The notes under the pieces were generated by a model, which saw only the letters and a list, made by a program, of their open reading frames with translations, searched no databases and had not been told where the DNA came from. Positions 1-64,000 of a stretch of DNA of 64,000 nucleotides are shown here, piece by piece. Within the stretch, counting starts at the first letter, position 1; each line of letters starts with the position of its first letter. A program made the translations under genes and the position numbers. Source of the DNA: Octopus sinensis (lineage: Eukaryota); NCBI RefSeq assembly GCF_006345805.1, contig NC_043004.1, forward strand, positions 63,736,001 through 63,800,000, given 5' to 3'.

Positions 1-800
1 GTGTCCTGATTTGATATAATAGGCAGACACTAGTGTTTTGAAGCAGCAAGTAATTGCTAGAATACAGTAAAGACGAATGACCAGTGAAATATTACCTTTC
101 AAATAATGGCTGATGGAGGAAATAACTGATTCATTGACAAAGATATAGCACATTCCATTCAAGATTGTATTTTAATAGATATTTTCCTTGATTCACGTGC
201 CCATTTCTAAATTTCTACTCTTCAGTTAATAATTAATCTTGATTCTTTCACTGGTATTTTAATTTTAGTGCGTAACATAAACCACAGAATGTCGATGATC
301 TCCTTCTAAAATTATTTCATACTTACCCTTGATCATTTCTGTATCCTGTCGATATATCAATCTTATTTTGGGACGAGAATATGAATTAAACACAGATTCG
401 AACTAGAATATTTTATTCATATTATTTTCAAATATGGGAAGAATGTCAGCATATGTCGGAGAAGTGTTTACATTGATTATATTGTCACTAGTGATTCAAC
501 TTTTCTTATTTTATCACACATCAAGTATCAAAGGCGAATTAATCCACAGCTAAAAACGTAAGCATGGGCAAAATGATGCTGAACTCTCTGCACGGCATAC
601 AACTCTGCAAGCTCTCCCTTCGAATCTTTTCATGTTGCTCTCAATGTCTGAAACAATGCCATCCGTGTTGGGAAAGATGTAAGTCGATTACATCGACACC
701 AGTGTTCAATCATTTCTTAATGTTGTTGTATTTTATTCCATAAGCCAAATACAGAAATCACAGTAGTAACATATGTTTCTGTTTTCCATTTAAATTTCAG

Positions 801-842
801 ATTAAGATTGGATGAAGGCAGTGTGGATTCTTCGACAGTCTT
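801..842 (+). CDS. M13 peptidase cytoplasmic-tail exon, copy 1 (LRLDEGSVDSSTVL)
   Basis: tttcag|...|gtaagt; 42 nt, phase 2-2; paralogous to 3387-3428. Confidence 0.65.
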
Positions 843-1099
843 GTAAGTTCTTCGCTACCGATATATTATTATCCTCATTCTGGTTTATACATCTTATTTT
901 CTCACATATTTCATTTGACAATCCTTATTCCTTATAATTACTATGTATGTAATACCTTGCACAACACTCTCTCTCTCTCTGGTTGCTCACTGACTATCCA
1001 TTAGGAAAATAGGACATATTCTTTATTTGTAGCAGTAGCTTTCTGTCTTTGCCAAGAAATGTAAAGATGAAAAACCCAACCGTAAATTCTATTCAAATG

Positions 1100-1510
1100 T
1101 TGTACTCAACTTCTTGCCCTAGAGCTTTGGCATAGTTGTTCTCAACAGAGGGCGAAATAATCTGCATGCCTCTCATTTCAGCAGCGGGAGGTTTCAGTAA
1201 TTACTCGAAATAGATGAAGTATAGACCAGGTAGTTACTTTCGAATTACTCATCGAGCTTGTGCGAAGCTCTCGTTTGGAGACGCTTGCTGGCTATATTGA
1301 CATCAGTAAGTCTTTTCACTTGATGGACAGGGATGTGTTCAGAAGAATTCTGGTGTTACGAGGCATAATTCTGTGGCGGTTAGGCTGATTGCGACCTTCA
1401 CGCAATTCATACTGCAGCCAGCATCTGACTGATTCCCACTCCGATCTGGCTCCGTCAGGGATGTTCCAAATAAAACCAGTATCTGCATGTCCAGGATAAT
1501 TGACCGGATG
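1100..1510 (+). mobile_element. Possible highly decayed mariner transposase relic
   Basis: HSDLAPSGMF resembles YSPDLAPSDF; otherwise very degenerate. Confidence 0.25.
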
Positions 1511-2110
1511 GTGAAACATTGAGTTCTGGTGCAACCATAGATGTAACTAAGATTACAGTCCTGAATTTTGAAAATGTTTCAGGTAATATATGTTGCAGTG
1601 CTTCTCAATGTCTCAAGGAATGCACTCCTTTCACTAAGTATAGAAAGCTGAATCAATTTGCCTTAAAGTTTCTTCTGAGAAAATCCAGTCCTACGTTGGT
1701 TTCACTAAGTTGATTTGCATTTTGAAACCACGACTGATAACATTATAAATATTGTACTATACATAGATACAAAGTATATGTGTATTCTTGAAAATATCAA
1801 TATTTCACTACTTCCTTATTCTGCCATTACAAGGAATGGATAACGTATACCATAGAATATTAAATTACCAAATGTAGCTCACTACGAAATCACTGAGGGG
1901 GCATAGGTAGAAGTAAGTATATAAAAATGGTGTCTTAAATCTAAGACACTTGCGTGGGTATAAACTTCTGCAACACAGAATAGCCCAACAAAATTTGCCT
2001 GTAAAATCTAATCTGTTTAAGCTTTAACGTATAGAAGTTTGACTCATTATACATTGATGTATATTATGATGAAATCATTTAATGCTACATAAAATTTATT
2101 AATACCCAAA

Positions 2111-2329
2111 TCTGTTTGCCGGGGGATCGTGGTGCTGCGAAGAAAGGACTCAAACAACGGGGATAAAATAGACAATTTCAGGCCCATCACTCCGCTTAAT
2201 TGAGATTTGAAGATTTTGGCCAAGGTATTAGCAGAAATGTTGGCGCATATCGCGTGTGGATTAATCGGGAAAGCATAAACTTGCGGCATTCGCGGCAGAT
2301 CTATCCAGGACAACCTCCATCTTATACGA
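2111..2329 (+). mobile_element. Tx1/L1-clade LINE RT fragment with stops
   Basis: Translates to ...IDNFRPITPLN*DLKILAKVLA...*TCGIRGRSIQDNLHLIR. Confidence 0.85.
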
Positions 2330-3386
2330 TATACATACATGCATATATACATGCTTACATACATACACACGTACGTACATGCTTACATACATACATACAC
2401 ACGTACGTACATACATACCTGCCTATAAATGTGAGTATATATACATGTATGTGTGGTTATCCATACAGGGTACCACGAACGGCTATTCAATTGAATCCAA
2501 TACAGCCAATTAGATACACAGGATGTCAGGGACCACAGTACTCGTAACAAAACAATATTTATAGTCAATTTTGACAACATAAGCTATCAAAATAAGGAGT
2601 GTCCTGCTTTGATATAATAGGCAGACACTAGTGTTTTGAAGCAGCAAATAATTGCTAGAATACAGTAAAGACGAATGATCAGTGAAATATTACCTTTCAA
2701 GTAATGGCTGATGGAGGAAATAACTGATTCATTGACAAAGATATAGCACATTCCATTCAAGAATGTCTTTTAATAGATATTTTCCTTGATTCACGTGCCC
2801 ATTTCTAAATTTCTACTCTTCAGTTAATAATTAATCTTGATTCTTTCACTGGTATTTTAATTTTAGTGCGTAACATAAACCACAGAATTTCGATGATCTC
2901 TTTCTAAAGTTATTTCATACTTACCCTTGATCATTTCTGTATTCTGTCGATATATCAATCTTATTTTGGGACGCGAATATGAATTAAACACAGATTCGAA
3001 CTAGAATATTTTATTCATATTATTTTCAAATATGGGAAGAATTTCAGCATATGTCGGAGAAGTGTTTACATTGATTATATTGTCACTAGTGATTCAACTT
3101 TTCTTCTTTTATCACTCATCAAGTATCAAAGGCGAATTAATCCACAGCTAAGAACGTAAGCATGAATGATGCTGAACTCTCTGCACGGCATACTACTCTG
3201 CAAGCTCTCCGTTCGTTCGAATCTTGCTCTCAATGTCTGAAACAATGCCATCCGTTTTGGGAAAGATGTAAGTCGATTACATCGACACCAGTGTTCAATC
3301 ATTTCTTAATGTTGTATTTTATTCCATAAGCCAACTACAGAAATCACAGCAGTAATACATGTTTCTGCTTTCCATTTATATTTCAG

Positions 3387-3428
3387 ATTCAGGAGGAATG
3401 AAGACGATGAGGATTCTTCGACAGACTC
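3387..3428 (+). CDS. M13 peptidase cytoplasmic-tail exon, copy 2 (FRRNEDDEDSSTDS)
   Basis: tttcag|...|gtaagt; 42 nt, phase 2-2; joins the TM exon in frame. Confidence 0.72.
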
Positions 3429-3811
3429 GTAAGTTCTTCGCTACCGATATATTTCTATCCTCACTCTGGTTTATACATCGTATTTTCTCACATAATATTT
3501 CGTTTGACAATACTTATTGCTGATAGTAACCATATTTGTGATACTGTGCACACATTCCTCTCTCTCTCACCCTCTCTCTCTCTCTCTCTCTCTGGTTGCT
3601 TTCTGAGCAAAGACGTTTTGTAAATATTGTCTAGTTTTCTCTATTGACGGTCTAGATGGGTCCATAATAACCAGCAATGAATCGTGCCTATACAAACTTC
3701 ACTTGGTATTACGGAAATACATGAGGAGTCACTGGCTGAGGTATGGACCGACCAGATCTGTAACCTGAGCAGAGTAAGAGGGGTCCATAGTTATATCAAA
3801 CAAATTGTTAC

Positions 3812-3865
<54 letters not shown>

Positions 3866-3959
3866 GATTATTATTATTGAAGGTTTATCGGCACCAAAGC
3901 TTATCATCGAAGGAAATTGGTGCCTTCCTAGCAGTTAGAATTACGTCTATTTCTTAGAG

Positions 3960-5420
3960 GGTCAGGTTTGTAAAGTGTTTAGCTAGAATTAGAGCTTTGT
4001 TATGGAGATAGGGGATGCAGAAGTGTAGTAATTGTTGATAAGAATTGTAGGAATGAGGATGTTTTTGTATATTCAGGGAGGGGAAACTAGGCTATAAACT
4101 CACCTGTTCAAGAGCAACAGTTAACGGTTAATTTTTCCCTAACTATAGTTATTATATAGTCTAATATATTCTTACTGATTTGTCCTAAGTCCGATATGGT
4201 AGGGCAGATGAACCTTATGCAGGGTTTGGTTATGAAATCCGTCTTCTTGTCTTTAAGGTTGAAATGCGCAACTGTTGGGTTTTAGAGTTCAGTAAGATCC
4301 TCTATATTCACTTACTATTGAGGGCTGTATTAGTTTTATTAGGAAGGAACTGCATGAGTCCAACAAGATCGCTCCGACGTCCGTCCTGGATACCACAAAC
4401 ACCAATCACTGTAAACCAGTGAACGAATTTGGAGTAGACAATCAAATGGAGTGCTACAACCCAATTGTTTCACATTTCAACCTTTGAGACCACAACCAGG
4501 ATTTCATAACTAGATATTCTATAAGGATCATCTGCCCTACCAAATCGGATTTAGCAGGAATCAATAAGAATATATGAGACTATATAATACCATCCGGAGA
4601 GGCTTGTCTGAAAAGATACAAAAGATATGCGGTCCATATGACATCAGGACAGTATTCACGCGTAATAAAACACTTCGAGTAAAAACACCAATAGAAGAGA
4701 ATATGACCAAAGTCTGCATGTACTCCATCCCATGCAGCTGTGTTAGGTTATACAAAGGCGAAACATGCCGCCCCATCAAAATAGGGGTAGAGGAACATCT
4801 CAAACTGTGGCATGAGGAGATATTGATAAATCGACTGTAGCTGATCATGTATGGAAAAATGAAGACCAACTCCCACAGTAGGATTAAGTTAAAATAACAG
4901 ACAAAGAACACCACTGGAAGATAGAAAACTGTAAAGAAGCAGCACATATGCTAGGGCACAACAACCACCTAAGCAGACCGGGTGCAGATAAGAGTAGCAT
5001 ATGGGAACCGGTATTAAGGAAGGATAGGAAAATATTAGATTTATAACATCTCGAGTTCGATTCCATACAGTGACCTGAATATTAATAAAAATACCATCGA
5101 AAAATACCTTAGGAATGAGAACCCAGCTTTGAAATTTCCCCAAGACACCTGATGAAGCCTGGATGGTATATCAACCGAAATGTTGTGTTAACAACAAACA
5201 AGATGAGGACAAATATCCGTCAAATGTAAATAATGTAAATAATTAATATAATAGATATAGTTAGGGAAAAAATAGACGTTAACTTTTAGCTTTGAACAGG
5301 TAATGTTATAGCCTAGTTTCACTTCCGTGAAAATAGAAACTCCTCCGCATTCCTATAAATTGATATCAAGAATTACTACGCTTCTATATCCACTATCCTG
5401 TCTGGATTTACCTGGGATTA
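3960..5420. mobile_element. Nested Penelope-like fragments: inverted RT N-terminal fragments plus a GIY-YIG 3' fragment (~4590-5255, +)
   Basis: ORF 4574-4840 has MYSIPCSCVRLYKGETCRPIKIGVEEH (GIY-YIG). 4150-4275 is inverted relative to 4470-4590, and 3990-4150 relative to 5255-5420. Confidence 0.75.
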
Positions 5421-5896
5421 TACTTGAGGACTTATATCTCCGCTGAAGTACAGGCCAAAATCCATATTCTCTGAAAGAAGATGAGCTGTGAACTTTATCC
5501 TCCTGTCTTCTATTTTATTCACCATTCTTCTGTCTACTATTTTATTCTTTTATACTCTACGAATTCTGTGTCTGGAATTTTCCAATATGAACACCTTGTC
5601 TCTGATGATGGGAAACCCAGTGTATGGAGATGCTGACCCATCTCCTAAGATATCTCAGAAACAGTTGTAAGACATTAATTACTTCTAATTCGCCTTAATA
5701 TAACTGGATACTCTGATCTGAAATACTCGCAATGCATTGGTTTTGTTGTTGTTTTTCTTCAAATATACACCTGCTAATTTGGAAGTCTTCTGCGGATCCC
5801 ACCCCTCAACTGAGAATTTGGAACCTAACAGATGACTAATTATAGCAGATACACACCGTATCCGTTTAGATCATCAGTGAAATTAAACACCTATAA

Positions 5897-7600
<1,704 letters not shown>

Positions 7601-7927
7601 CTGAAGTAACTTAAAGACAAACCACAAAATACTTTTTGTTGCTTCTGTATCAGACGGAAGAAAAAGAAAATGAATGAAAGAAGCAAACAAACAACGATAG
7701 AAAGAAAGAAAGAAAAAGAGAAGGAAAGAGAGGAGGATCAGGATTATTGATTAATGTTAGTACGCTGTTATGTATGCTACATGGAGAGAAATTTTGTTTT
7801 CTTGATGGTCAAGCTTCGATCCCTTTATTTTCTCACTAAAGCCTTACATTTGCATCACAAATATATTGAAATATTGCCATCCCTTTCTAAATACATGCAA
7901 TATTTTAACTATATGTTTTATTTGCAG

Positions 7928-8034
7928 GAAAGCGCGAAAAATTTGTATTATTGGAACCGTGGCAATAGGCATCATAATTTTGAGCGTAGTAGTGGTGTTG
8001 GGCGTAAAACTACTTATTGCTAATCAAAGACAAG
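7928..8034 (+). CDS. M13 peptidase signal-anchor/TM exon (KARKICIIGTVAIGIIILSVVVVLGVKLLIANQRQ)
   Basis: ttgcag|...|gtaaag; basic residues then a ~22-aa hydrophobic stretch; phase 2-1. Confidence 0.88.
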
Positions 8035-8641
8035 GTAAAGTATCCTCCTCCGTAATACGAACACCAACACTTTACATTTATCGCATAAGAGCCTGCACCA
8101 CCACCACGTGCATCACACATAACAGCTCATCATTTTCGCCATCCTTCTTCTCTATCTAGTTACCATCGTCCTTATAATCATCATCACTTCAATTATTTCT
8201 CTCTAGCTTTAAGTGGAAGCCAAATTTTATTCAAGTTACATATGTTATTAGAAAAAATACTTCCTATAAGTTGAATCTTATGAAGAAAAAGCAGTCGGTC
8301 AAACCTGGAATATATTTCTTCATAGTCTATCTCGATCAAAGCTGATCTTGGAATGGAATAACAAGAAAAAATATCTATAACTGAAACAAAGCAAACACGT
8401 ATCTATCATACATAATCTACAACCACCAAGAAATAGGAGTCAAACTTCCTTGAAACGGCAGCTTATTCGTATGAAAATAAAGAACAGTAGTGTATAATGT
8501 TGTCCTAAATGCACTAATTGTAGAAGGATGGCATCACCAAGGTTACAATGTGCATTTAATTAGCTATAGATATTGATACTCTCCTCGTTACTGGTGTTAC
8601 TTATCACTGATGTAAATGAGCTAAATGTCTTTTTCTTTCAT

Positions 8642-9519
8642 CCAGAATGCTAGAAAAAGATCATCAACGATCAAACTACAAGGGAAATTCTCTAGAGGAA
8701 GAATTCAGCGAACACCAGAACCAACTTTGGCGGGCAGGATATATGAAAAATTAAATAAATAACAGACTTAAATGCATACCTCGGTTTCGGTCTTAACAAA
8801 AGAATTATGCATTTAAGTCTGTTATTTATTTAATTTTTCATATGTCCTGCCCGCCAAAGTTGGTTCTGGTGTTCGCTGAATTCTTCCTCTAGAGAATTTC
8901 CCTTGTAGTTTGATCGTTGATGATCTTTTTCTAGCATTCTGGCCGGCTTCCTAGCAGGCCAGCCCTGCCAATATACACATATATTTGAATTTTTCTGACT
9001 CCTCAGATTTTTTGAATGCTGGACTAGTGGTTTTAAATTGATATTAAAATTAATATTAATTTATCTCCCTCAATTTTTAAATATTTAAATAAATACGTTC
9101 CCTAGTTGTAAGTACTACCCGCAGTGAATTATTCACTGCAGCCCTTCGCTTCAGGAGTCTCTCAGCGCGCCAGAACCAAGACATTTGAAATTTTATTCCC
9201 GATGTAATCAGTAAGACTAAGCACGTGTCTGTCTTGACACAGAGAGCTGGGGTTAGTCTTGCGGTTTGCATCTCGAGGACCGAATGTACTGATGAAGTCA
9301 CGGACACTTGAATTATGCAAGTAATTCTTTTGTTAAGACCGAAACCGAGGTATGCATTTAAGTCTGTTATTTATTTAATTTTTCATATGTCCTGCCCGCC
9401 AAAGTTGGTTCTGGTGTTCGCTGAATTCTTCCTCTAGAGAATTTCCCTTGTAGTTTGATCGTTGATGATCTTTTTCTAGCATTCTGGCCGGCTACCTAGC
9501 AGGCCAGCCCTGCCAATAT

Positions 9520-9524
<5 letters not shown>
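8642..9524 (+). mobile_element. Noncoding hammerhead-containing element (inverted arm + two direct repeats), Penelope-like/retrozyme-like
   Basis: 8642-8778 is inverted to 8806-8942 (1 mismatch); 8806-8979 is directly repeated at 9351-9524; hammerhead core at 9282-9359. Confidence 0.8.
9282..9359 (+). ncRNA. Type I hammerhead ribozyme, predicted cleavage after 9352 (GUA)
   Basis: Stem I GAAUGUA/UGCAUUU; core CUGAUGA (9289-95); stem II GUC/GAC with inner ACUUG/CAAGU; GAAA (9341-44); stem III ACC-GA-GGU. A-C mismatch at the base of stem II. Confidence 0.72.
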
Positions 9525-9553
<29 letters not shown>

Positions 9554-9670
9554 GTTGAGTGTCTGTGTGTGTGTGTGTACATGTGTGCATGAATGAGCGT
9601 GTATGTACGTATGTATGCGTGTGTTTCCGATGGGTATGTCAGTTTACGTGTTTCACTTTAATCCTTGCAG

Positions 9671-9712
9671 GTCACGATGCAACAATAACAGTAATCACGA
9701 GTTTGAAGGCAG
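9671..9712 (+). CDS. M13 peptidase stalk micro-exon (GHDATITVITSLKAA)
   Basis: ccttgcag|...|gtaaga; 42 nt, phase 1-1; gives ...KAAHNVLNKLNTSEDPC on splicing. Confidence 0.75.
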
Positions 9713-10349: not shown

Positions 10350-10545
10350 CTAATTCAGTCTGAAAATTGCGTATCGGCATTTCGTCCGTCTTTAGGCTCT
10401 GAGTTCAAATTCCGCTAAGGTCCACTTTGCCTTCCATCCTTTCGGGGTCAAAGAAATAAGTACCAGTTACGTACTGGGATCAATGGAATTGACTAGCCCC
10501 CCTGCCCAAACTTTCAGGCCTTGTGTCTATAATAGAAAGGATTAT
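10350..10545 (+). mobile_element. tRNA-derived SINE family C, partial
   Basis: Shares GAGTTCAAATTCCG...TTTGCCTTcCATCCTTTCGGGGTC with 19110-19326. Confidence 0.8.
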
Positions 10546-13904: not shown

Positions 13905-14075
13905 CTCATAATGTACTGAATAAATTAAACACCAGTGAGGATCCTTGCAATAATTTTTGGAAATATTCTTGTGGGGAATACATACAAACTCGAAAACCGT
14001 TACAGACATCGAAATTCAGCTTAGACATGAACGTAAAAGCAGAAATGCAGCGATCCATTGATGAAAACGTTATTG
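13905..14075 (+). CDS. M13 peptidase exon (HNVLNKLNTSEDPCNNFWKYSCG...)
   Basis: ccag|...|gtacgt; M13 DPC-x7-CG motif; 171 nt, phase 1-1. Confidence 0.95.
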
Positions 14076-18560: not shown

Positions 18561-18761
18561 CAGGGAAAGAGGAAGAGGAGGAGGAAGAGGGGGAGTCTAG
18601 TCATGGTATGAATAAGTTAATTATTTGTGAAACTCAGAAGGACGGTAGGTCGTTGACTGTCCATTTGAACACCTCTTCAGAAATATTGTTTAATATTTTA
18701 AAAATTATATTTACTTCAAACAATATTTATTAAAAGATATTTCCATTTGCTCCAATTTCAG

Positions 18762-18958
18762 ACACTATATCAATGACATTGAAGGCGGATTTAATAAACC
18801 TATCTGAAACATTGGGTGGAATACCTATGATAACAGGGCGAAACGTTTCAGGCAATCATTCCAGTATTTTACACAGATATTTCACTGTTACAGGAAAGTT
18901 ACCTTTCTTCAATTACTATGTCGTTGAAAGCAATCAAAAACGCAGCAGCATAGTCAAC
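18762..18958 (+). CDS. M13 peptidase exon (...LSETLGGIPMI...PFFNYYV...)
   Basis: tttcag|...|gtaagt; LGGIP matches M13 LGGWP; 197 nt, phase 1-0. Confidence 0.88.
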
Positions 18959-19109
18959 GTAAGTGTTTCTTTTTATACGTGATAAGCACAGAAGATTACA
19001 TTCGATGATATAATTCTTATTCATAGTTTACAATTTATTCAACCCTTGCATATTGAGTAATCTTGCATATTGTTTATAAGCATTGTCTATAATTAATGAG
19101 CCACTAATA

Positions 19110-19326
19110 GGCGGTGAGCTGGCAGAAGCATTAGCACGCTGGGCGAAATGCTTACAGGTATTTCGTCTGCCGCTACGTTCTGGGTTCAAATTTTCTCCGA
19201 GGTCGACTTTGCCTTTCATCCTTTCGGGGTCGATAAATTAAGTACCAGTGAAACACTGGGGTCAATGTAATCGACTAGTCCTTTCCCACAAATTTCAGGC
19301 CTTGTGTCTTTAGTAGAAAGGATAAT
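19110..19326 (+). mobile_element. tRNA-derived SINE family C
   Basis: GGCGGTGAGCTGGCAGAA head, GGTTCAAAT B box; other copies at 23957-24170, 10350-10545 and 44568-44760. Confidence 0.88.
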
Positions 19327-19450
19327 TAATGAGCCACTTATAAATGCGCGGACACTTTCCTCTTCTGGACAAAGATACTCTCCAAAATTTGCATATACAT
19401 ATCTCTCAGTTCTCTTAGCGCATTTAATCTTATATTCGGATTTTTTTCAG

Positions 19451-23683: not shown

Positions 23684-23956
23684 GTAAGTATACTTATATC
23701 TTTCATGTATTTTTATAAAATATGTTGTGGTTGAATTATATGCGTTTTAGATAATTTGGAAGGTTACCATGGTTTGTGAATATATATGTAATTCATTCAT
23801 ACTGATTTACTACTGAACATTTTGTATAAAACTTAACAAATACGAAATCTTTGTGCAGAAAAATGTGGTAGATATATAATCGAAATTTAGAAAACGGGTT
23901 AGTTTCACGTTTTAATTACGGTTCCGTTCTCTATTATTATCTCATACTTCATTAAG

Positions 23957-24170
23957 GCGGTGAGCTGGCAGAATCATTAGCACACCGGGCGAAATGTTTA
24001 GCGGCATTTCGTCTGTCTTCATGTTCTGAGTTCAAATTCTGACGAGGTCGACTTTACCTTTCATCCTTTCGTGGTCGATAAATTAAGAACTGGTGACACA
24101 CGGGGTCGATGAGATCAACTATCTCATCCCTCAAATTTCAGACCTTGTACCTATAGCTGAAAGGATAATT
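23957..24170 (+). mobile_element. tRNA-derived SINE family C
   Basis: Close copy of 19110-19326. Confidence 0.85.
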
Positions 24171-27624: not shown

Positions 27625-28163
27625 GCAAGTATCTTTTGTATACCTTTCCTTAAACATACTTCAGAAACTCTGTTCGAGATTAAAGATAATATGCCATAAC
27701 AAATACCTATTTCTTTATTACCTACAAGGGGCTAAACATAGAGGGGACAAACAAGGACAGACATAGGTATTAAGTCGATTACATCGACCCCAGTGCGTAA
27801 CAAATACCAACATTTCAAAACATATAGGTGTAGTATATACCTACATTGTCATAATAAATTTATAAGGAAAGGGGCAACTCTCTTATTTCGCTTTGCAAGT
27901 ATCGAAGTAAGCGAACCAAAAATTTTCCAGTCTAGAAGTTCAAATTTTCTTTCAGTATCTAGGAATGGATCATTTCACAGTAGTCGTATTACTGATCATG
28001 AATACTCTTTTCTTCCTTCATATTATTGTTAAAAGAATTTCGTATCTGATTATATTCCGATGCACTCAATTGTCTAAAGCTTTCCTCTTGTATTTTACCA
28101 CACAATACACCTGACCAACGCCTATGATCAATATTTCATTGACGTACTTACATAAATCTACAG

Positions 28164-30049: not shown

Positions 30050-30053
<4 letters not shown>

Positions 30054-31288
30054 CCGCAATAATAAGATGCACCATCCAAAGGCAGACATAGATCGTCTTT
30101 ACCTTCCCAGAGCTCAGGGAGAGCGAGGTTTGATCGAGCTTGAATTTGCGTACAAAGCCACCACAATTGGACTGGCCAAATACCTTGAAGCAACCAACGA
30201 TTGGATGCTAAAACTTGTTGAAAATCATGAAAGACCGGAAAACCTTCATTCTATTCTGAAAGAGAGCAAAACAAATCGCTACTGATCTCTTAGATACATA
30301 TCAGGTTGAAGGAACTGCTGCTGCAAAGAAAATATAATTAATTGCAAAGACAAAAGCACATGAAAAATTAGCTAGCAGATGGGAAAAGAAACCTCTGCAT
30401 GGTAAGTATGTGTCCTGTAGCAAACAAGCTGATGTCGACCAGAAACACACGGACCAATGGTTACTAAGCTCAGCGCTAAAAGCAGAGAGTGAAGGTTTCA
30501 TATTAGCTGTTGAAGACCAAAGCATATTAACTCGGAACTACCAAGCCAATGCGATAAAAAATGGAGCTGACCCAAAATGCCGATTTTGTAATAATGAGAT
30601 TGAAACTATAGACCACCTAATCTCAGGGTGTAGAGTCTTAGCACCTTTAGAATATAAAGCAAGACATGACAGAGTCGGCCAGTAATTACACTGGACAATA
30701 TGTCGACATTATAACATCAAAACCGCTGACACCATCCTGAAGCTGTGATTGAGGGAGAAAATGTGTCGATTCTATGGACCTCTCCATACATACCGACAAA
30801 ACTATAAAAGCTAATAAACCGGATGTTATAAAAGATCAGACAAAAAAGGAGTGTTTATTAATTGACATGAGTATACCTTGCGATCACAATATATCGGCGA
30901 AAGAATTTGACAAGATCAGTAAATATAAAGACTTGCTAATAGAAAATTGAACAAAATGTGGCATCTCAAGGCGATTACAGTACCAATGATTGTGGGATCT
31001 CTAGGAATGATGAAAAAATGTAATGAGACCTATTGAAAATGATACCAGGCTTACCATCCCTACTGGAAGTGCAAAAAATCGTGTTAACTGGAACGGCTCA
31101 TGTACTGAGAAGAACATTAACGCTGTGAAAACAACATCCATTCATGAATTTATTTATTAATTATTAAATACATATTTTACCTTTGAATTTGCGTGTGTAA
31201 TCTGGGAATGCATACAACGAGCTTCTCTGCCCAAAGTGTACGGAAAACACTCGACCAGAAACGGAAGAAAATTTGAAGAAAGAAGGAA

Positions 31289-44563: not shown

Positions 44564-46514
44564 ATCAAGTCGGTGAGGTAGCAAAATCGTCAGCACACCG
44601 GAAAATTTTTTCAGATCAAACTCTACCGAGGTTGATTTTGCTTCTCATTATTCGACCTCGATAAAATCAATACCAGTCAATCAATGGGCTCCATGTAATC
44701 GATTGTCACCCTTCCTCAAATCTTCTGGCCTTGTACCTATAGCAGAAAGGATTCTTTTTATTGTTGTCGTTGTTGACATTGTTACAGCAAGCAGAGTCAG
44801 TGTAGCATCAAAGAAAAAGCTTCTGGTATACGTTCCTCTATTTTATGTGCTGACATCAAAACTAGTCGAGGCCAACACATTTATCCCTCTGGTGTCAGTA
44901 AAACAAAGTATGAGTAAAGTACTTCTACGGTTTATACAAAGGACACTTATATATTTGGACAAATGTAAATGTGCTGATAATACAAAAGTGTACATATCTG
45001 AGTATTCCATATACATGAGTATCATTCATGTACTATTCAGTTGAAGTTTGACACAGTTTGTAATATGGATGATGGACCTTTGACTAACCGGTAGAATTCA
45101 GGGAAAGAAATAGTCAATCACATTATAAACATTTCATATAACGAACCCAAAAGAATTAAATGCTAAATTTGACATCGGAGTGATTGGAATGCAGATTGTC
45201 AGAAAAAAATTGTCCGACCCTTTAATGTCTTTGCTAATTCACCGCCATACTTCGTACTGCAATGTTGTTTACAAGTGGCTACGTCTTATCTAATATAGAT
45301 ATGGGAGGACAATTTTCACTAGTTTCCTATATACACGACCCAAACACTATCCTGTCTCAGAGTCTTGATATATTGTGATAGTTTGGGTCACTTCGGTATA
45401 TATGTGTTAATATATATATCAACATATGCGTGACTGTATTTTCTATATGCCGTTTAATGTTAAATACTTTACGAATATAGAATTTAGAATTACACGACTT
45501 AATATTAGTGATCTATTGTGTGGTGTTGATATTGCGTCCGGGAAAGTTTTCCTGAATTAACACAATTTCAGTTTAATTGGTAAAACGGTTCCATTATTTA
45601 ATTCCCTCCTCTACCTTGTTCCACTATGCTTAGATACATACATTTTCACATTATATTAATAACAAAATACAAGTATAAATATTCCATTTGTAATTACCCA
45701 TACTTCTCGATACAACAATATCTTACATTCGGCCGAAATAAAACTTCTAATGCTGCATCAATCATCGAGTCTTTGACAAATTACAAAGCCTCAACGGCCG
45801 AAACAGAGACGGAATCACAAAACACCATTGACAATTGTGAAATTCTCATTGGAGAAAGACATAATGCAGGTAAAATAAATTGTGGAGACCTTTGTTGTGA
45901 GATGTGCATATGGAACAAGAAACAACCAAAAGCTTCAAGAATGTGAAGAAACTACAGTTGAATAGGAACATGAATTCCAAAACAAAAGAATTTCATCTGC
46001 TGCATCTCATGCCTATGAATCGAAGGGGGTCAGAATTAATTAAAACCTTGTGAGGGTGCAGAAACAGCAAATTAAAAATCTGTTTCTTAAAAATGTTTCA
46101 TGTAGTGTGCATCTAGTGATTTGCGCAAATGGAAAATTCTAGGAAAATTACCTTTTCTGAAAATAAAAGAATATACGATCAACAACCAAAAGCAAAATTA
46201 TTCTGAATCCGAAACTAAATCGGAAGTAGTCAACACATCGCCCAAACCAAATTCTTCTATACATATTACTCCAAAAGGGTTGGATTTAAAAACTAGTTTT
46301 GACAGGGCGAATAAACAATACGAAAGAATCATTCCAAAATGTTTGCCATTCCGTTTTTCAAATGTTTTTAAATAAATAACATTTAAGAAAAACCTTTCTT
46401 TCAATATTGTGAATGTATCAAATCTTACTTTTTTTTGTGCAAAATTTTATATATACGTGAGCGTTTTGTGTGAGTATGTGTTTTCGTGCGTGCGCGTGTG
46501 TATGTATAAACGTG

Positions 46515-50190: not shown

Positions 50191-50258
50191 GCCTATTAAA
50201 CTTGGTGGATTAGGAACATTAATTGGACATGAAATATTACACGCTCTTGATGTTCATA
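50191..50258 (+). CDS. M13 peptidase catalytic exon (PIKLGGLGTLIGHEILHALDVH), HExxH at 50228-50242
   Basis: ctacag|...|gtacgt; zincin HEILH followed by the conserved D; 68 nt, phase 2-1. Confidence 0.96.
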
Positions 50259-51884: not shown

Positions 51885-54800
51885 GCGACGTTATGTTTAT
51901 GTTGAATAGAGTGATCGTTATGTTCATGTTCAAAAGAGTTCTAAATAAGGGGAGGTAATGAGTGATTTCTTCCGGTGTAAGGGAGATAATCGCTTAAAAG
52001 TTTTTTCCTTTCCCTTGGTGTGAATTTCTCTGTATCAGTATGTTGGCATGGTTAAGTCTGGGCTTGTACTTTTCAATGAAGAATGTTTCCTTGTTTAGTC
52101 TAATTTGTGTTGATGATCCGATTGCACATTGGTAAAATGGAAAGATTAAAAATTGTGGTAGTAGTTGCTTTCCGCATTTCTCAATGTGCTCACTAAAAGG
52201 TATCATTCTGTATTCTGGGAATGCAATCTGTTGTCGATGCAGTGTGCATCTACGTCTGAGTGATAGTCCCGTGGATCCCACGTAGTCTTGGTGGCAGCCC
52301 GAGCATTTTATGACATGAATTATGTTTTCAGAGGCACAAGTAAAGTTAGATTTGATCTTGAATTTCTGTCCCTCTTTAAAGAGGAATTCTGATCCTTCTA
52401 GCAGGTTTGGACATGTTGCACAGTTCGATCTACCACATTTTTTTACTTTTGCATCCGTAATTTCAGAAAACAATTTTGCCTTTGTGAGAATCTTTTTAAG
52501 TGATTTAGGTTGTTTGTAGCTTTTAATGATTTGGTGTATGTTTAGAATTTCCTTTAATTTGGGGTCCTTATGAAGTATTGGTAAATTCTGGGTGATGATG
52601 GTGAAGGCTTCTTTGTTTCTGGGGTTGTATGTAGATATGTAAGGTAGTATTTTCGGGGAAGGTGTGTTGTTGTGTTGAACTTTTCTTAAAGTTTCTATGT
52701 TGATTTCTGTTGCACGTCTGATCCCATCCTCTATGAGTTGAGTTGGGTAATGTCTGTCAATTAGGGTGTTTTTGAGTTCTTGCAGTCTAATGTTCCTGGT
52801 ATTTTGTTCTGACACTATTGTGCATATCCTTCTTGCAAGGTTGAAGGGGATGTTTGTTTTAGTGTGTCTTGGGTGGCATGAATTAAAAAGAAGGTATTGT
52901 TTGGTGTCTGTGGCTTTGTAAAAAATGTCTGTTTCTATTTTAAGGTTAATTTTTTTAATTAGTATATCCAAGAACGGGAGTTCCTTTTGGTTGTATTCCA
53001 TTGTGAACTGTATATTTGGGTTTATGCTGTTCAATAGGTTTTTAAATTTTAGGAGTTTATCTGTGTTTTCATTCCAGAGTATAAAACAATCGTCTAAGAA
53101 TCGTTTCCAATTCTCTTTTATGTATTGAGAAAGGGGGTTTCCAAAGATTGATAAAGATTCCTGGTAAATGATTATTTCCATGTAGCCCATTGTTAGGTTC
53201 GCAATGACTGGTGCTGCCCTTGTACCCATAGCAATTCCGGATTTTTTACGGTAAAATGTATTGTCAAACATGAAGTGGTTATTATGTAGGATGAATTCAA
53301 TTGATTTAGTAATGAATTCTTTACTGATCCTTTTTGGTATTTCTTCCGGAAATTGGTCCAGCCAGAACTGTATTGCCTCTAGTCCATAATTAATTAGGTA
53401 TACTGGTATATAAGTTAACTACATCAAATGAAACCAGGATTGTCTCTCTTGGCTTTTTTTGGAAGGTGGTTTAACATATCTAAGTCATCTCTGATATGGC
53501 TATCGATATGTTTAAGGAAGGGTTTCAGGAGGATGTCCATAAATAGACTTAGTCTGTGTGTTTCACAGGTTGGGCCAGCTACAATGGGTCGTAGTTTTAG
53601 GTCCCCCGGGTTAGGTGTGTGTATGTATGTCTTTGGTGATTTTTTAATGGTTTCATTTATAATTTGGCTTTTATGAATTTTGGCAGACCATAGAAAAGGC
53701 TAGGTTTGCATTTAAAGTTTGTTAGAAAGTCAATCTCTTTGGTTGTTTGTTCCTTTTCATGGGTTTTAATTAGTGAAGATAGAGTTTTCATTATTTTTTG
53801 TGGGGTGTAGTTGGTAATTTTGTCATAATGTAGGTCGTCATCAAGCAAGGAAATTACAAGATTTCTATAGTATGATGTATCCATTATTACAACTGCACTT
53901 CCCTTGTCTGCTTCCTTAATGGTTATATCCTCATCATTTTGAAGTTCTATCAGTTGCTTCCATTGTGTAGGGTTAGAATTTGAGTTAACTTTCTGTTTAT
54001 GTATAGTATGGTAGGGAAAGTTCTCAATGTGGTTACAGAATTCATCAAGATCTATATTTCTTCCTCTGTGTGGAATGTGTTCACTTTTGTTCTTGACTAG
54101 TGATTCATCTTCAGTATTGAAACTGGTTGATGCTTCTGCTAGTCTTAATTTTCTGCAAAATTCTGTTATATTATCCTTGATTTCATTTAGGTTGGCTCTA
54201 CGTGGAGTTGGTGTAAATTTGAGCTCTTTTGAGAGGATGTCAATTTTTATGTTAGAAAGAGGTTTGGTTGAAAGATTGATTATCTTCGGTTTTTCCTTAT
54301 TACTAGGTTCCAGCCTGTGTCCTGGTGTCTCTGGTCCCTGGCTAAAAAATGTTGGGTGTAATTTTGTTTGTATGAGTTGTCTGTGAGGTTGTGTGATATT
54401 GGGTCGGGGGAATGGTGGTATTGTTGCCCCCGATCGTTGTGTGTGTGGGAATCTATGGTTGTTTTTGTTTGTGGTGTGTGTAAAGTTTCTGTATGTGAAA
54501 TATTTTTGTTTCGAACTGCTTGTATGTGGGATGTTGCTTGACATAGTGTTTTTTGCGTTTGTCTTGTGTTCAGTGGGGACCAGTAATTTTGGTTCATGGG
54601 GTAGTAGCGACTTGTGTGTGGTGTATTTCTTATTCTAGTGTCGTTTTGTGCTGTATGGTGGTTGGGTCTGGTATTAGGATGTTGTTGGTGTGTTCTGTTT
54701 TTGGTGTAATTTATTTCATAGACGCGTCGTCTGTCAGCTAGTTCCCTGTTAGGTCTTGCGTGGTTTGCAAAGGTTGGTTGTGGGTGATTTCTGTTTTTAG

Positions 54801-55819
54801 TGTATGGAGGATAGTTGGGGGTTGTTCGTGGGTTGTTTGGTTTTTCTTTTTTATTTTTTGTAATTTTCTTAAGGAAGGGATTATTTGTACCCAATTCATT
54901 TTTGAAAGTTGAACTATATTTTTGGAAGAAATCGATGTTTTTCTCCCAGCGCTGGAGAGAATTTCTCTCTTCTTTTTCACAGGTATCCTTCCAATGATCT
55001 AATGTATTTTCGAGGGGTTGTCCCTCGGTATGTTTTTGTATTATATTGTGCATCTCCTCGTCGATGCTTTTAAATTTTTCCTCATTTGTGGAGACCCTTA
55101 GTCTTAAAAGCTCTATTTCTGATCTTAAATTGAACAGAGCTGACTTTTCCCTAATAGTTCTCTGTCCGTCAGGCTCGTTAGGAATTAATTTTATCTAGAA
55201 TTTGCGTGGGAGGATAATTGGTGTTGAGTTCATCCATCCCTCGTATATATCTGCTTTGTTGGAATTTTTTATCATGTTCCAGAAGGCGAGCTTTCTATTG
55301 TGCAGGTTTGTATTCCAAATGTTTCCTATTTTTCTTTTTGCTGGGTTAATTTGGGTGCGTATGATGTCCTGCTGTGTTTCATTTGGTGTGTGTTTTTTAT
55401 TTTCGGATTTGTTGATGAAAATTGAATTTAGTGTTGTGTATAACAGTTGCAGATCCTTACTAACCTGGTCAGTGTAGCGAGTTGTATCATCATTGCTTTT
55501 ACTTTCCCGGGCGAGTAGGTTTGATTCCTCGATTTTGTTGTTCAGGGTAATGAGCTGTGTATTGATACTTTTCAGTTCTTTGAGTATGTCCTCATTTGTA
55601 GTTTTATCCGAGGTGTTGGTCTTCTGTGGCATTTTCGGTCTCACGTGTTTAATATATAGATAAGAAAGTTGGTTTGTGAAAGCACGTGGTTGAATATATA
55701 GAAAATAGTAAAAAGTGAAAAAACTACAGAAGGCTTAAAGGTTAAAAAATATATATATTTGCGTCAATATGTCTGAAGAATATAAAAAAAAAATTTTTCC
55801 TTACAATGACATAATTTAG

Positions 55820-56377: not shown

Positions 56378-56920
56378 GTATATATATGCATACATATGTA
56401 TACATACATATATATATATGTACATATATATAATTTTAATATTTCTATAAATCACCATCAACAAATCAAGTTAAAATGATTATCAATGCAAAAACTCTAA
56501 TACCAATAGTATTCTAAAACATTATTTAAAAAGTGAAATATATTGCAAATAAATTATAAATAATTCTATAATTCCAAATCGAATGCAAACTTAGTTACAT
56601 ATGAACATTTACAAATTTTGTATGGATTAACTAATATTAATCATATTGTTAATCATTATTGAACCCATTATGACTCGGGTGAATATTAACCATATGAGAA
56701 ATTCCTAACTGTATTAACAATTAAAACATACCACAGATGGACGAGCTAATTGTTAGCTCTCCTCTTTGCATCACTACAAGTAATCAATGTATATTAAAAC
56801 TGACAATGAATATCGTTAACTTTTCTTCAACTTGGTGTACGACGACACTTTACAGACTGATTTAAATATAAAATAGTGAAGTAATATGTAATCTGTATTG
56901 TTGTACTGCGGGATGGTCAT

Positions 56921-59217
<2,297 letters not shown>

Positions 59218-62169: not shown

Positions 62170-63945
62170 ACTATTTTTTATTCTTCTTTCAAATTTGCTT
62201 CCATTTCTTGCCGAGTGTCTTCCCGACTCCTAGGGCAAAGAAACTCATAGTATACATTGGTAGGCCATTAAACCAAACTCAATAGTTCGTTCATTTTTTT
62301 TTTTTTTAAATTAAATTAAAATACATGAGCAGCAACAGTTCTCACATCGACAATGCTCTTCTCAATACGTGTGATGTACCAGTTAAGACAATCTTTTGCA
62401 CTTCTTGCAGGGATGGTAAGCCAGGGATCATTCTCATATAATTTTCGGTTCCCTTCTTGATCATTCCTAGTGCTCCTACGATCACTAGTATTGTAACCGC
62501 CTTGAGATGCCACATTTTCTCAATTTCAATGAGTAGGTCTTTATATTTTCTGAGCTTGTCAAACTCTTTCGCCGAGATATTATGATCACAGGGGATGCTC
62601 CTGTCGATCAATAAGCAAACTTTATTGTTTCGGTCTTTCACAACAATATCTGGTTTATTGGCCTTGATGGTTCAGTCTGTATGTACTGGAAAGTCCCACA
62701 GAATGGTTACATTTTCTCCTTCAGTTACAGCCTCAGGGTGGTGATTATACCACTTGTCGGCAGTTTTGATATTGTAATGCCGACTTATTAGCCAGTGTAG
62801 ATATTGGCCAACTCTGTCATGTCTTAATTTATACTCCACTGGTGCTAAGACTTTACATCCAGAGATTAGGTGGTCCACTGTTTCAATCATGTCGTTGCAG
62901 AATTGGCATTTTGGGTCTGCTCCATTTTTCATCACATTGGCCTGGTAGTTCCGGGTTAATAGGCTTTGATCTTGAGTAGCCAGGATGAAACCTTCGCTCT
63001 CTGCTTTTAGCCCTGAGCTACGTAGCCACTGATGGGTTTGCTTCTGGTCAACATCACCTTGTTTGCTGCGGGTCACATATTTGCCGTCCAGAGGTTTCTC
63101 CTCCCACCTATCAGCCAATTGCTCGTGCGCTTTCTTCATTGCCATCATTTTCACCTTCTTTGCCGTACTTCCCTCGGGTTGTTCAGTTTGGATATCCTGC
63201 ACGAGATCAATAGCAAATTTTTTGCTTTCCTTTATGATAGAATGAAGCTTCTTTCGTCTCTCGTGATTTTCCACGAGCTTTAGCATCCAGTCATTCGATA
63301 TTTCGAGATATTTGGCCAGTCCAATTTTGGTTGTTTTGTAAGCTAGTTCAAATTGGATCAGGCCTCGACCTCCTTGGGCTCTGGGAAGGTAAAGGCGATC
63401 TACGTCTGCCTTTGGGTGGTGCATCCTATTACAACTCAGCAGCTTGCGTATTTTTCTATCTATATTCTTTACTTCACTCATATTCCAGTTCAACACATTG
63501 TAGCTATAAGTAACAACTGGAACTGCTAAGGAATTTATAGCTAACACCTTGTTACGTGCATTTAGTTCAGATTTCAGGACTGCACGAACTCTCCTATAAC
63601 ATTCCTTCCTGATATTCTCTTTCATGCTTGCATGCTGAATACCAGAGCCTTCATTTATCCCTAAATATTTGTATGTTTGTTCTTGCTCAAGCTCTCTTAT
63701 GACTGTGTCAACATCTAACACGACTGAATATGTGGTCTTCACTTTCCCTTTCTGGAAAGTGGCCTTGGCACACTTCTCAAGTCCAAACTCCATCCCGATG
63801 TCATCGCTGAATGCTTTCACGGTGCGCAATAGGCCTTCAAGTTCATTATTGTCTTTACCATAAAGTTTTAAGTCATCCATATAAAATAGATGGCTTATTT
63901 TTTTATTGGCAATTTTATACCCATACCCTGTTCTGTTTAAGAGCG
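62170..63945 (-). mobile_element. Relatively young R4/Dong-clade retrotransposon 3' half (RT end, CCHC, PD..D RLE, 3' UTR)
   Basis: YMDDLKLYG, CQFC...HLISGC, KPDIVV..CLLID, KYKDL; one in-frame TGA at 62672-74; 3' end abuts (TAA)n at 62135-62170. Confidence 0.93.
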
Positions 63946-64000
63946 CCAGCCTTGACAGCGGCTGGACGTGTTCCTCACTGCTCTGACAGTTCGGTGGCCG

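Follow-up and report, generated by a model that had tools for sequence, protein, structure and literature searches.

The cytoplasmic N-termini of the ECE-1 isoforms a-d differ and set the localization of the enzyme, and CK2 phosphorylates the N-terminus of ECE-1c (PMC11515556, PMC4767467). Arrays of tandemly duplicated exons are known as sets of mutually exclusive exons, for example in Dscam (PMC9013439, PMC9741552), and accelerated exons lying among conserved introns have been described in venom families (snake PLA2, three-finger toxins, 'ASSET'; PMC2711939, PMC2474615, PMC6062510). Here we analyzed a 64,000-nt stretch of an Octopus sinensis chromosome (the window) that carries a metallopeptidase gene, gene A, whose N-terminal tail contains stacked 14-residue modules, each encoded by its own 42-nt exon. 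Between copies these exons differ far more than the introns around them, and the kind of changes that they have accumulated suggests that the modules were probably remodeled by diversifying selection.

Gene A corresponds to the RefSeq entry "membrane metallo-endopeptidase-like 1", with isoforms X1 (XP_036361320.1, P0013) and X2 (XP_036361321.1), and is located on chromosome CM016866.1 of assembly GCA_006345805.1, as are the two paralogs described below, genes B and C. Exact exon mapping placed residues 53-665 of X1 on the plus strand of the window with 100% identity and 0 mismatches; this mapping was used in place of a tblastn search with human neprilysin and of motif regular expressions, which found few exons. 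As judged from its sequence, gene A is an M13 (neprilysin/ECE-family) membrane peptidase with a predicted type II topology. P0013 matched Pfam PF05649 (Peptidase_M13_N, 107 bits) and PF01431 (Peptidase_M13, 158 bits), both above the cut-offs, and the top PDB match, obtained with the window exons only, was ECE-1 (3dwb, E=3.6e-12). The HExxH zinc motif of M13 is present as HEILH, and the downstream ExxxD ligand (ENIAD) is found in EENIADLGG of P0013, which is encoded past the end of the window. A 22-residue hydrophobic run, ICIIGTVAIGIIILSVVVVLGV, comes after KARK; from family knowledge and the positive-inside rule we take the protein to be in the type II orientation, with the residues before this run forming a cytosolic tail.

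The two 42-nt segments of the window are real internal coding mini-exons of this cytoplasmic tail, placed directly before the signal-anchor exon, and each of them adds one 14-residue module. Both isoforms carry the two modules together, as MEKKE-LRLDEGSVDSSTVL-FRRNEDDEDSSTDS-KARKICIIG, with KARK followed by the transmembrane segment, and the peptides listed for these exons in the initial annotation were exact against the RefSeq models. The sole difference between the predicted models X1 and X2 is a further 14-residue unit, FRGDEVNADSSSFP, which is present in X1 and is encoded upstream of the window; hence, additional copies do lie upstream, as had been anticipated. The tttcag/gtaagt sites and the symmetric 2-2 phase proposed for both copies were borne out, so that each exon begins by supplying the last base of a split codon, closes with two bases and fits the signal-anchor exon at 7928, and the splice flanks of the two copies are equal except for one base of the acceptor tract. 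Since the signal-anchor exon starts with a single codon-completing base and its open reading frame (ORF) has no in-frame ATG, an upstream coding exon ending in two bases is required, and both 42-nt exons fit. The exons had also been expected to be stacked, skipped or swapped without frameshift: stacking is seen in both models and skipping is predicted for the sibling unit encoded upstream, but the in-window exons are neither skipped nor swapped in any model.

The window carries direct repeats at 1-979 and 2599-3577, with a start-to-start spacing of 2586-2598 nt. What had been taken for a duplicated unit of ~2.6 kb is a real repeat, but the part found twice in the window is only about 980-1000 nt long; the full ~2.57-kb unit occurs three times in the array of gene C. 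The spacer 980-2598 has no second copy in the window, and it does not recur after copy 2 because this copy is the terminal, differently ending unit. Copy 1 is 94-97% identical to units of the gene B and gene C loci and may continue upstream of the window. No further copies of the array unit were found in the window that would make it a dispersed repeat, and in the gene C locus the unit is confined to the array. The first 540 intronic nt, estimated initially at ~97% identity, were about 97.4% identical when measured, and over the upstream intron of the in-window pair 28 of 788 aligned positions differ (3.6%), in addition to indels. A recount of the exon copies gave again 11 differences in 42 nt, 10 of them non-synonymous (including the junction codon, TT-G in one copy and TC-G in the other) and one synonymous (AGA/AGG), and the divergence of the exon is significantly higher than that of the upstream intron (Fisher p=9e-7).

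Related arrays are found in the two paralogs. Gene C (P0001, XP_029639718.1, locus L001) encodes a protein 35-37% identical to that of gene A, and its tail contains three copies of NRVVAGEPGPLTVF and one of NSRNNNEPVSKV; the exons, three of 42 nt and one of 39 nt, start at L001 25470, 28038, 30607 and 33374 (spacing 2568, 2569 and 2767 nt), and the P0001 model stacks all four units. Gene B (P0012, XP_029640079.1, locus L002) and gene A encode bodies that differ at 7 of 486 residues, and the tails of the two proteins are not alignable: that of gene B reads MAERK-YSEVAVGPCSSTVS-YSEVAGGLGPSKVA, with two 42-nt exons at L002 21534 and 23257. A third unit of gene B (L002, about 18669-19240) has lost the stretch that matches 797-1082 of the window, including the 42-nt exon. 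A unit of the FRGDE type was not found in L001 or L002.

The arrays are part of a larger block that the three loci have in common. The 5' block of gene A is 91-95% identical to that of gene B, i.e., more diverged than the bodies of these two genes, and about 93% identical to that of gene C. Between genes B and C the block is collinear over at least 34 kb at 93-97% identity, beginning upstream of the first module and reaching about 1.9 kb beyond the anchor exon, and it covers upstream DNA, the 33-nt modules described below, the 42-nt modules and the signal-anchor exon. Past 8.6 kb the introns of the window are no longer similar to L001, and with L002 the window is 98.2-98.5% (98.3%) identical, introns included (window 9516-55088). 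Judged by these comparisons, the 5' block is one that was recently copied or homogenized among at least three paralogs of one chromosome, because its identity reaches 91-98% even with gene C, the body of which is only about 37% identical. Its history is thus separate from that of the gene bodies: either paralogs exchanged the block or, should A and B be alleles, the block is a deeply diverged haplotype. The shift in identity coincides with a repeated element at 8642-9529. Its part 8642-9095 has matches to L002 in either orientation, and 8806-8984 recurs as a direct repeat at 9351-9529 (98% identical); the element may mark the breakpoint of the block. In gene C the acceptor of the anchor exon is altered (tttatttgcag to ttttagtccctg; L001 48458-48574, compared with window 7928-8034), and its annotated exon starts 6 nt earlier, which adds two residues (PW).

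We then aligned eight units from the three loci, each consisting of the exon with 800 nt of upstream and 140 nt of downstream sequence. For all distinct pairs of units, the upstream 800 nt differ by 3-5% and the exon by 17-49%, and 28 of the 42 exon columns are variable compared with 117 of 955 elsewhere (p=3e-15). The acceptor 17-mer and the donor 20-mer are invariant in seven of the eight units, and outside the exon the single variable stretch is the (CT)n end, at which internal-type units part from last-type ones. Copy 1 of the window groups with the internal units of genes B and C and copy 2 with their last units, which indicates that the two-unit structure is older than the split of the three blocks rather than a slip of the local assembly. 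Of the possible reading frames, the annotated one alone stays open across the six distinct exon sequences, and a blind scan of the three 5' regions (tttcag, 33, 39 or 42 nt in open frame, gtaagt) recovered only the annotated module exons. The signal-anchor exon behaves similarly, with 9-21% divergence among the three paralogs, compared with 2.3-3.6% over roughly 850 flanking nt (p 8e-4 to 1e-10). An Rfam scan of positions 1-9600 gave only sub-threshold, spurious matches of microRNA models on TA/TG microsatellites, so that no RNA gene explains the conservation of the introns.

The nature of the changes was analyzed by Nei-Gojobori counts on the 13 full codons of each exon. The proportion of differing non-synonymous sites (pN) was 0.19-0.64 and that of synonymous sites (pS) was 0-0.14 in most pairs, with pN/pS from roughly 2 to >10. 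Non-synonymous sites were about ten times, with a range of 5-15 times, more diverged than introns (p 2e-3 to 7e-14), and synonymous divergence was close to intron divergence (not significant). When the three within-locus contrasts were pooled, 26 of 85 non-synonymous and 2 of 26 synonymous sites differed (p=0.02), and the comparison with the intron gave p=4e-16 for non-synonymous and p=0.24 for synonymous sites. Furthermore, the variable columns fall on codon positions 1, 2 and 3 in the numbers 9, 12 and 4, so that third positions are nearly fixed and first and second positions are close to saturated (4 of 13 vs 21 of 26, p=0.004). The initial annotation had left two evolutionary options for these exons, diversifying selection or escape from gene conversion, and the data favor the first, with non-synonymous divergence far above and synonymous divergence close to that of the intron. 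We consider it likely that the tail exons underwent rapid amino-acid-changing evolution by diversifying selection after the block was shared; selection is favored over old, shielded exons because the interleaved synonymous sites look young, not old.

The same data bear on whether the 42-nt segments could be non-functional pseudo-exons in fast-decaying or hypermutable DNA, over-predicted by the gene models. The tails are indeed short and of low complexity, and the exons are those of predicted models, but relaxed constraint is unable to raise exon divergence above that of the intron or to give the observed bias among codon positions. The open frame and the invariant splice flanks, maintained despite the number of variable columns, and the need of the signal-anchor exon for an upstream coding exon that ends in two bases also speak against pseudo-exons, and we regard this explanation as extremely improbable.

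A stronger competitor, although still an unlikely one, is that the exons are old and carry ancient differences, while gene conversion homogenizes the introns and selection removes the conversion tracts that overwrite exons, in the manner of the X-linked opsins, in which introns are more alike than exons. The identity of the 5' block between genes with such different bodies means that homogenization or recent transfer is real; the distances between upstream introns are star-like, being about as large within as between loci; the units are mosaic, with exons grouping by locus and downstream flanks by array position; and the signal-anchor exon has a pS of 0.07-0.11 compared with 0.02-0.04 in its flanks. 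However, the synonymous divergence of the tail exons is indistinguishable from that of the intron, and third codon positions that are nearly invariant beside near-saturated first and second positions are unlike those of old exons. Synonymous sites interleaved with about 20 selected sites within 42 nt cannot be converted separately, so that old exons should show a high synonymous divergence (dS). Conversion is clearly active in the 5' block, and probably both selection and conversion act.

It was also considered whether uncollapsed haplotypes or expansions from long-read assembly account for the duplication in the window or for the near-identical paralogs, in which case the divergence would be allelic. 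The near identity of the A and B bodies, introns included, would agree with this, as would the many fragmentary M13 models of the region, one of them on a 108-kb unplaced scaffold. In gene C, three units (L001 24673-32576) differ at 0-1 of 982 aligned nt and have identical exons, as would result from a very recent triplication or from an expansion during assembly. On the other hand, divergence between the in-window units amounts to 3.6% plus indels, each unit represents a different structural type with counterparts in both other loci, and a single mRNA model includes both. Moreover, if A and B were alleles, their tail differences would be an extreme polymorphism that still implies diversifying or balancing selection. 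Taken together, an artefactual or allelic origin is improbable.

Several points nevertheless weigh against diversifying selection on tail modules as the account of this locus. The pairwise comparisons of units are not independent, each pair offers only 6-11 synonymous sites, and with exons so short dS is imprecise; for the in-window pair alone the difference between non-synonymous and synonymous sites is not significant (p=0.65). The raised pS of the signal-anchor exon means that some escape from homogenization may contribute. The isoforms of gene A are automated RefSeq predictions, genes A and B, with 1.7% divergence, could be uncollapsed haplotypes, and the three identical units of gene C could be an assembly expansion. 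Finally, of the acidic CK2-type sites (S/T-x-x-D/E) initially attributed to the tail, copy 2 has one (SSTD, an S-x-x-D match after an acidic run) and copy 1 has none.

The remainder of the tail of gene A, farther upstream, is made of 33-nt modules, PLNSSKMPGTK and PLISFEMEKKE. In the paralog loci such modules are 33-nt exons between tttcag and gtaagt, and the annotated start codon is part of one of them; the peptides encoded there (SPNSFEMAERE, PLNSSEMPDG and SLNSCEMAERK) form the start of the tail. The closest pair of 33-nt modules differs at 4 of 33 exon positions and at 16 of 798 flanking positions. A different start was considered and rejected: a start-codon mini-exon, ATGCCATCCGTGTTGGGAAAGAT followed by gtaagt, at 656..678 (+), with a second copy at 3245-3267, is unused in all protein models. 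Were each unit to have its own start in this way (ATG at 656 and 3245, encoding MPSVLGK and located 122 nt before the 42-nt exon), the gene would have alternative 5' ends as in ECE-1. The ATG is followed by a gtaagt donor in compatible phase and yields complete ORFs, and the element is found in eight of eight units, but it is used in none of five protein models, in which the annotated starts are in the 33-nt modules upstream. In addition, the element is no more variable than the surrounding intron, and its donor is inside a 38-nt core common to SINE-like repeats, and such alternative 5' ends are very unlikely.

The modules of the three paralogs differ in character, those of gene A being acidic and Ser/Thr-rich and those of gene C Pro/Gly-rich, while the tail modules of gene B begin with YSEV, a sequence similar to YxxΦ sorting signals. 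In the mechanism that we propose, repeated positive (diversifying) selection would remodel the tail modules after the 5' block has been shared, and the modules would function in the cytosol as short signals for sorting or phosphorylation, through which every paralog or isoform acquires a localization or turnover of its own. The second part is the weaker one and is drawn by analogy; a role in sorting or turnover seems reasonable because the ECE-1 isoforms differ in their cytoplasmic N-termini and CK2 phosphorylates the ECE-1c tail. A still broader reading, which we put forward tentatively and as rather doubtful in its entirety, is that an octopus-specific M13 cluster uses a recently exchanged 5' block with arrays of 33- and 42-nt exons as a diversity cassette for tail and anchor, the introns being converted or duplicated and the modules being under strong positive selection. 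If this were true, dN would be about ten times the neutral rate, and the tails would encode an intracellular address particular to each paralog, isoform or allele, or would be caught in an arms race with a partner inside the cell; were A and B alleles, they would represent an extreme balanced polymorphism of a cytoplasmic tail. The locus would then be a compact natural experiment, with many variants of its 14-residue modules, on how short cytosolic motifs set the trafficking and turnover of an ectoenzyme, and it would show conversion and selection partitioning a gene at exon-intron resolution.

The M13 cluster looks lineage-specific in octopus, because the relatives found outside octopus reach no more than about 35% protein identity; in the protein search with P0011 as the query the nearest relative was P0001, at 37%. 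A protein search with a hand-spliced N-terminal model of the window returned zero matches, and a second one gave a paralog of 35% identity as its sole match; the window's own protein surfaced through a paralog query. The RefSeq names within this one O. sinensis cluster (P0001, P0010, P0012, P0014 and P0016-P0019) are inconsistent and include MMEL1-like, neprilysin-11-like, neprilysin-2-like, ECE1-like, ECE2-like, 'EEF1AKMT4-ECE2 readthrough'-like and uncharacterised, and several of the protein models are truncated fragments. Automated names would thus have obscured a fast-evolving, lineage-specific octopus M13 cluster.

The coordinates of the features are collected in Table 1. The window is AT-rich (34% G+C) and full of microsatellites and retroelement remains. 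A SINE-like family is represented by at least four intronic copies in the window and by many in L001, and each array unit carries a SINE-like core of 25-38 nt, AAGTCGATTACATCGAC(A/C)CCAGTG, just after the unused ATG and gtaagt.

Table 1. Features of the window and of the paralog loci, with coordinates (window positions unless a locus is given).
Feature	Coordinates	Strand	Basis or remark
5' block within the window (tail array, signal-anchor exon and the next 600 nt or so)	1..8644	+	Matches L001 22961-49170 and L002 18669-37041, 91-98% DNA identity
Repeat copy 1, conserved part of internal-type unit (intron, 42-nt exon, start of next intron)	1..979	+	Aligns to 2599-3577
42-nt tail exon copy 1	801..842	+	Encodes (E)-LRLDEGSVDSSTV-(L), P0013 residues 53-66; exact to both isoforms; flanks tttcag/gtaagt
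Spacer (intron) of unit 1	980..2598	+	Homologous spacers between units of L001 and L002 at 92-98%
TACA/TATG microsatellite inside the spacer	about 2330-2450		
Repeat copy 2, terminal (last-type) array unit	2599..3606	+	Indels and downstream sequence common to last units L001 u4 and L002 u2
42-nt tail exon copy 2	3387..3428	+	Encodes FRRNEDDEDSSTD-(S), P0013 residues 67-80; exact protein match; flanks tttcag/gtaagt
Signal-anchor (transmembrane) exon, KARKICIIGTVAIGIIILSVVVVLGVKLLIANQRQ	7928..8034	+	First base completes the codon opened by the preceding tail exon
Juxtamembrane exon, GHDATITVITSLKA, also exactly 42 nt, phase 1-1	9671..9712	+	Exact to P0013 residues 116-129; flanks ag/gt
First Peptidase_M13_N exon, containing SEDPCNNFWKYSCGEY	13905..14075	+	P0013 mapping, Pfam, PDB match
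HEILH zinc-motif exon	50191..50258	+	Motif and P0013 mapping
33-nt symmetric mini-exons, each with an in-frame ATG	L001 9982-10014, 12197-12229, 14539-14571; L002 9982-10014		
SINE-like intronic copies	10365-10545, 19109-19327, 23952-24170, 44626-44752		
SINE-like core in the array units	669-706, 3255-3295		Also at 27771-27795
zf-RVT fragments	30052-31033	+	
Long ORFs	51997-55734	-	Weak RVT_1 match
Reverse-transcriptase ORF, running off the window end	62675-64000	-	RVT_1 32 bits (above cut-off) and zf-RVT
Dense microsatellites (TA/TATG, ATT, AAC/AAT, ACC, CT)	3819-3890, 5890-6530, 7100-7600, 56900-57010, 58350-58550, others		

No paper dealing with this locus turned up in a literature search on octopus and neprilysin. 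The gene and its exons are present in RefSeq, and both tandem exon duplication (PMC9013439) and exons that outrun their introns (PMC2711939, PMC2474615, PMC6062510) were already known. Gene A resembles ECE-1 and neprilysin in its M13 family, in the predicted type II layout and in predicted isoforms or paralogs that differ in the tail beside the signal anchor, X1 and X2 differing only in the predicted cytoplasmic N-terminus (by the unit named above). The likeness to ECE-1 that had been drawn initially does not extend to orthology or mechanism, since gene A is not an ECE-1 orthologue: ECE-1 isoforms arise from alternative promoters and first exons, whereas the tail of gene A is built from stacked tandem internal mini-exons of 42 and 33 nt and its predicted isoforms come from an internal cassette. 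With Dscam-type arrays the locus has in common adjacent homologous exons of equal length and phase that stem from tandem duplication of exon plus intron; the octopus gene models, however, include two to four copies together, so that the repeat appears in the protein, and one cassette is skipped, and thus mutual exclusivity is not what these models show.

As in venom genes, the exons of recent duplicates are far more diverged than the introns and show a non-synonymous excess. To our knowledge, exons that outpace introns are a hallmark of a few adaptive systems (venoms, immunity, reproduction), nearly always affecting extracellular surfaces. Venom genes are varied on secreted surfaces that face the targets in the prey; in octopus it is the cytosolic tail and the membrane anchor that vary, and the ectodomain of the recent duplicates has changed at only 7 of 486 residues. 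The variable exons of protocadherins and the X-linked opsins belong to conversion-homogenized clusters that keep diversity in selected segments. The octopus locus is like them in that non-coding DNA is kept similar and specific coding segments differ, but the synonymous sites of its tail exons look as young as the introns, which speaks for recent substitutions and not for the preservation of old ones. It is in combining several features that the locus is unusual: modules that are stacked and not exclusive, a cytosolic tail and anchor as the target of change, and a 5' block common to paralogs with very different bodies.

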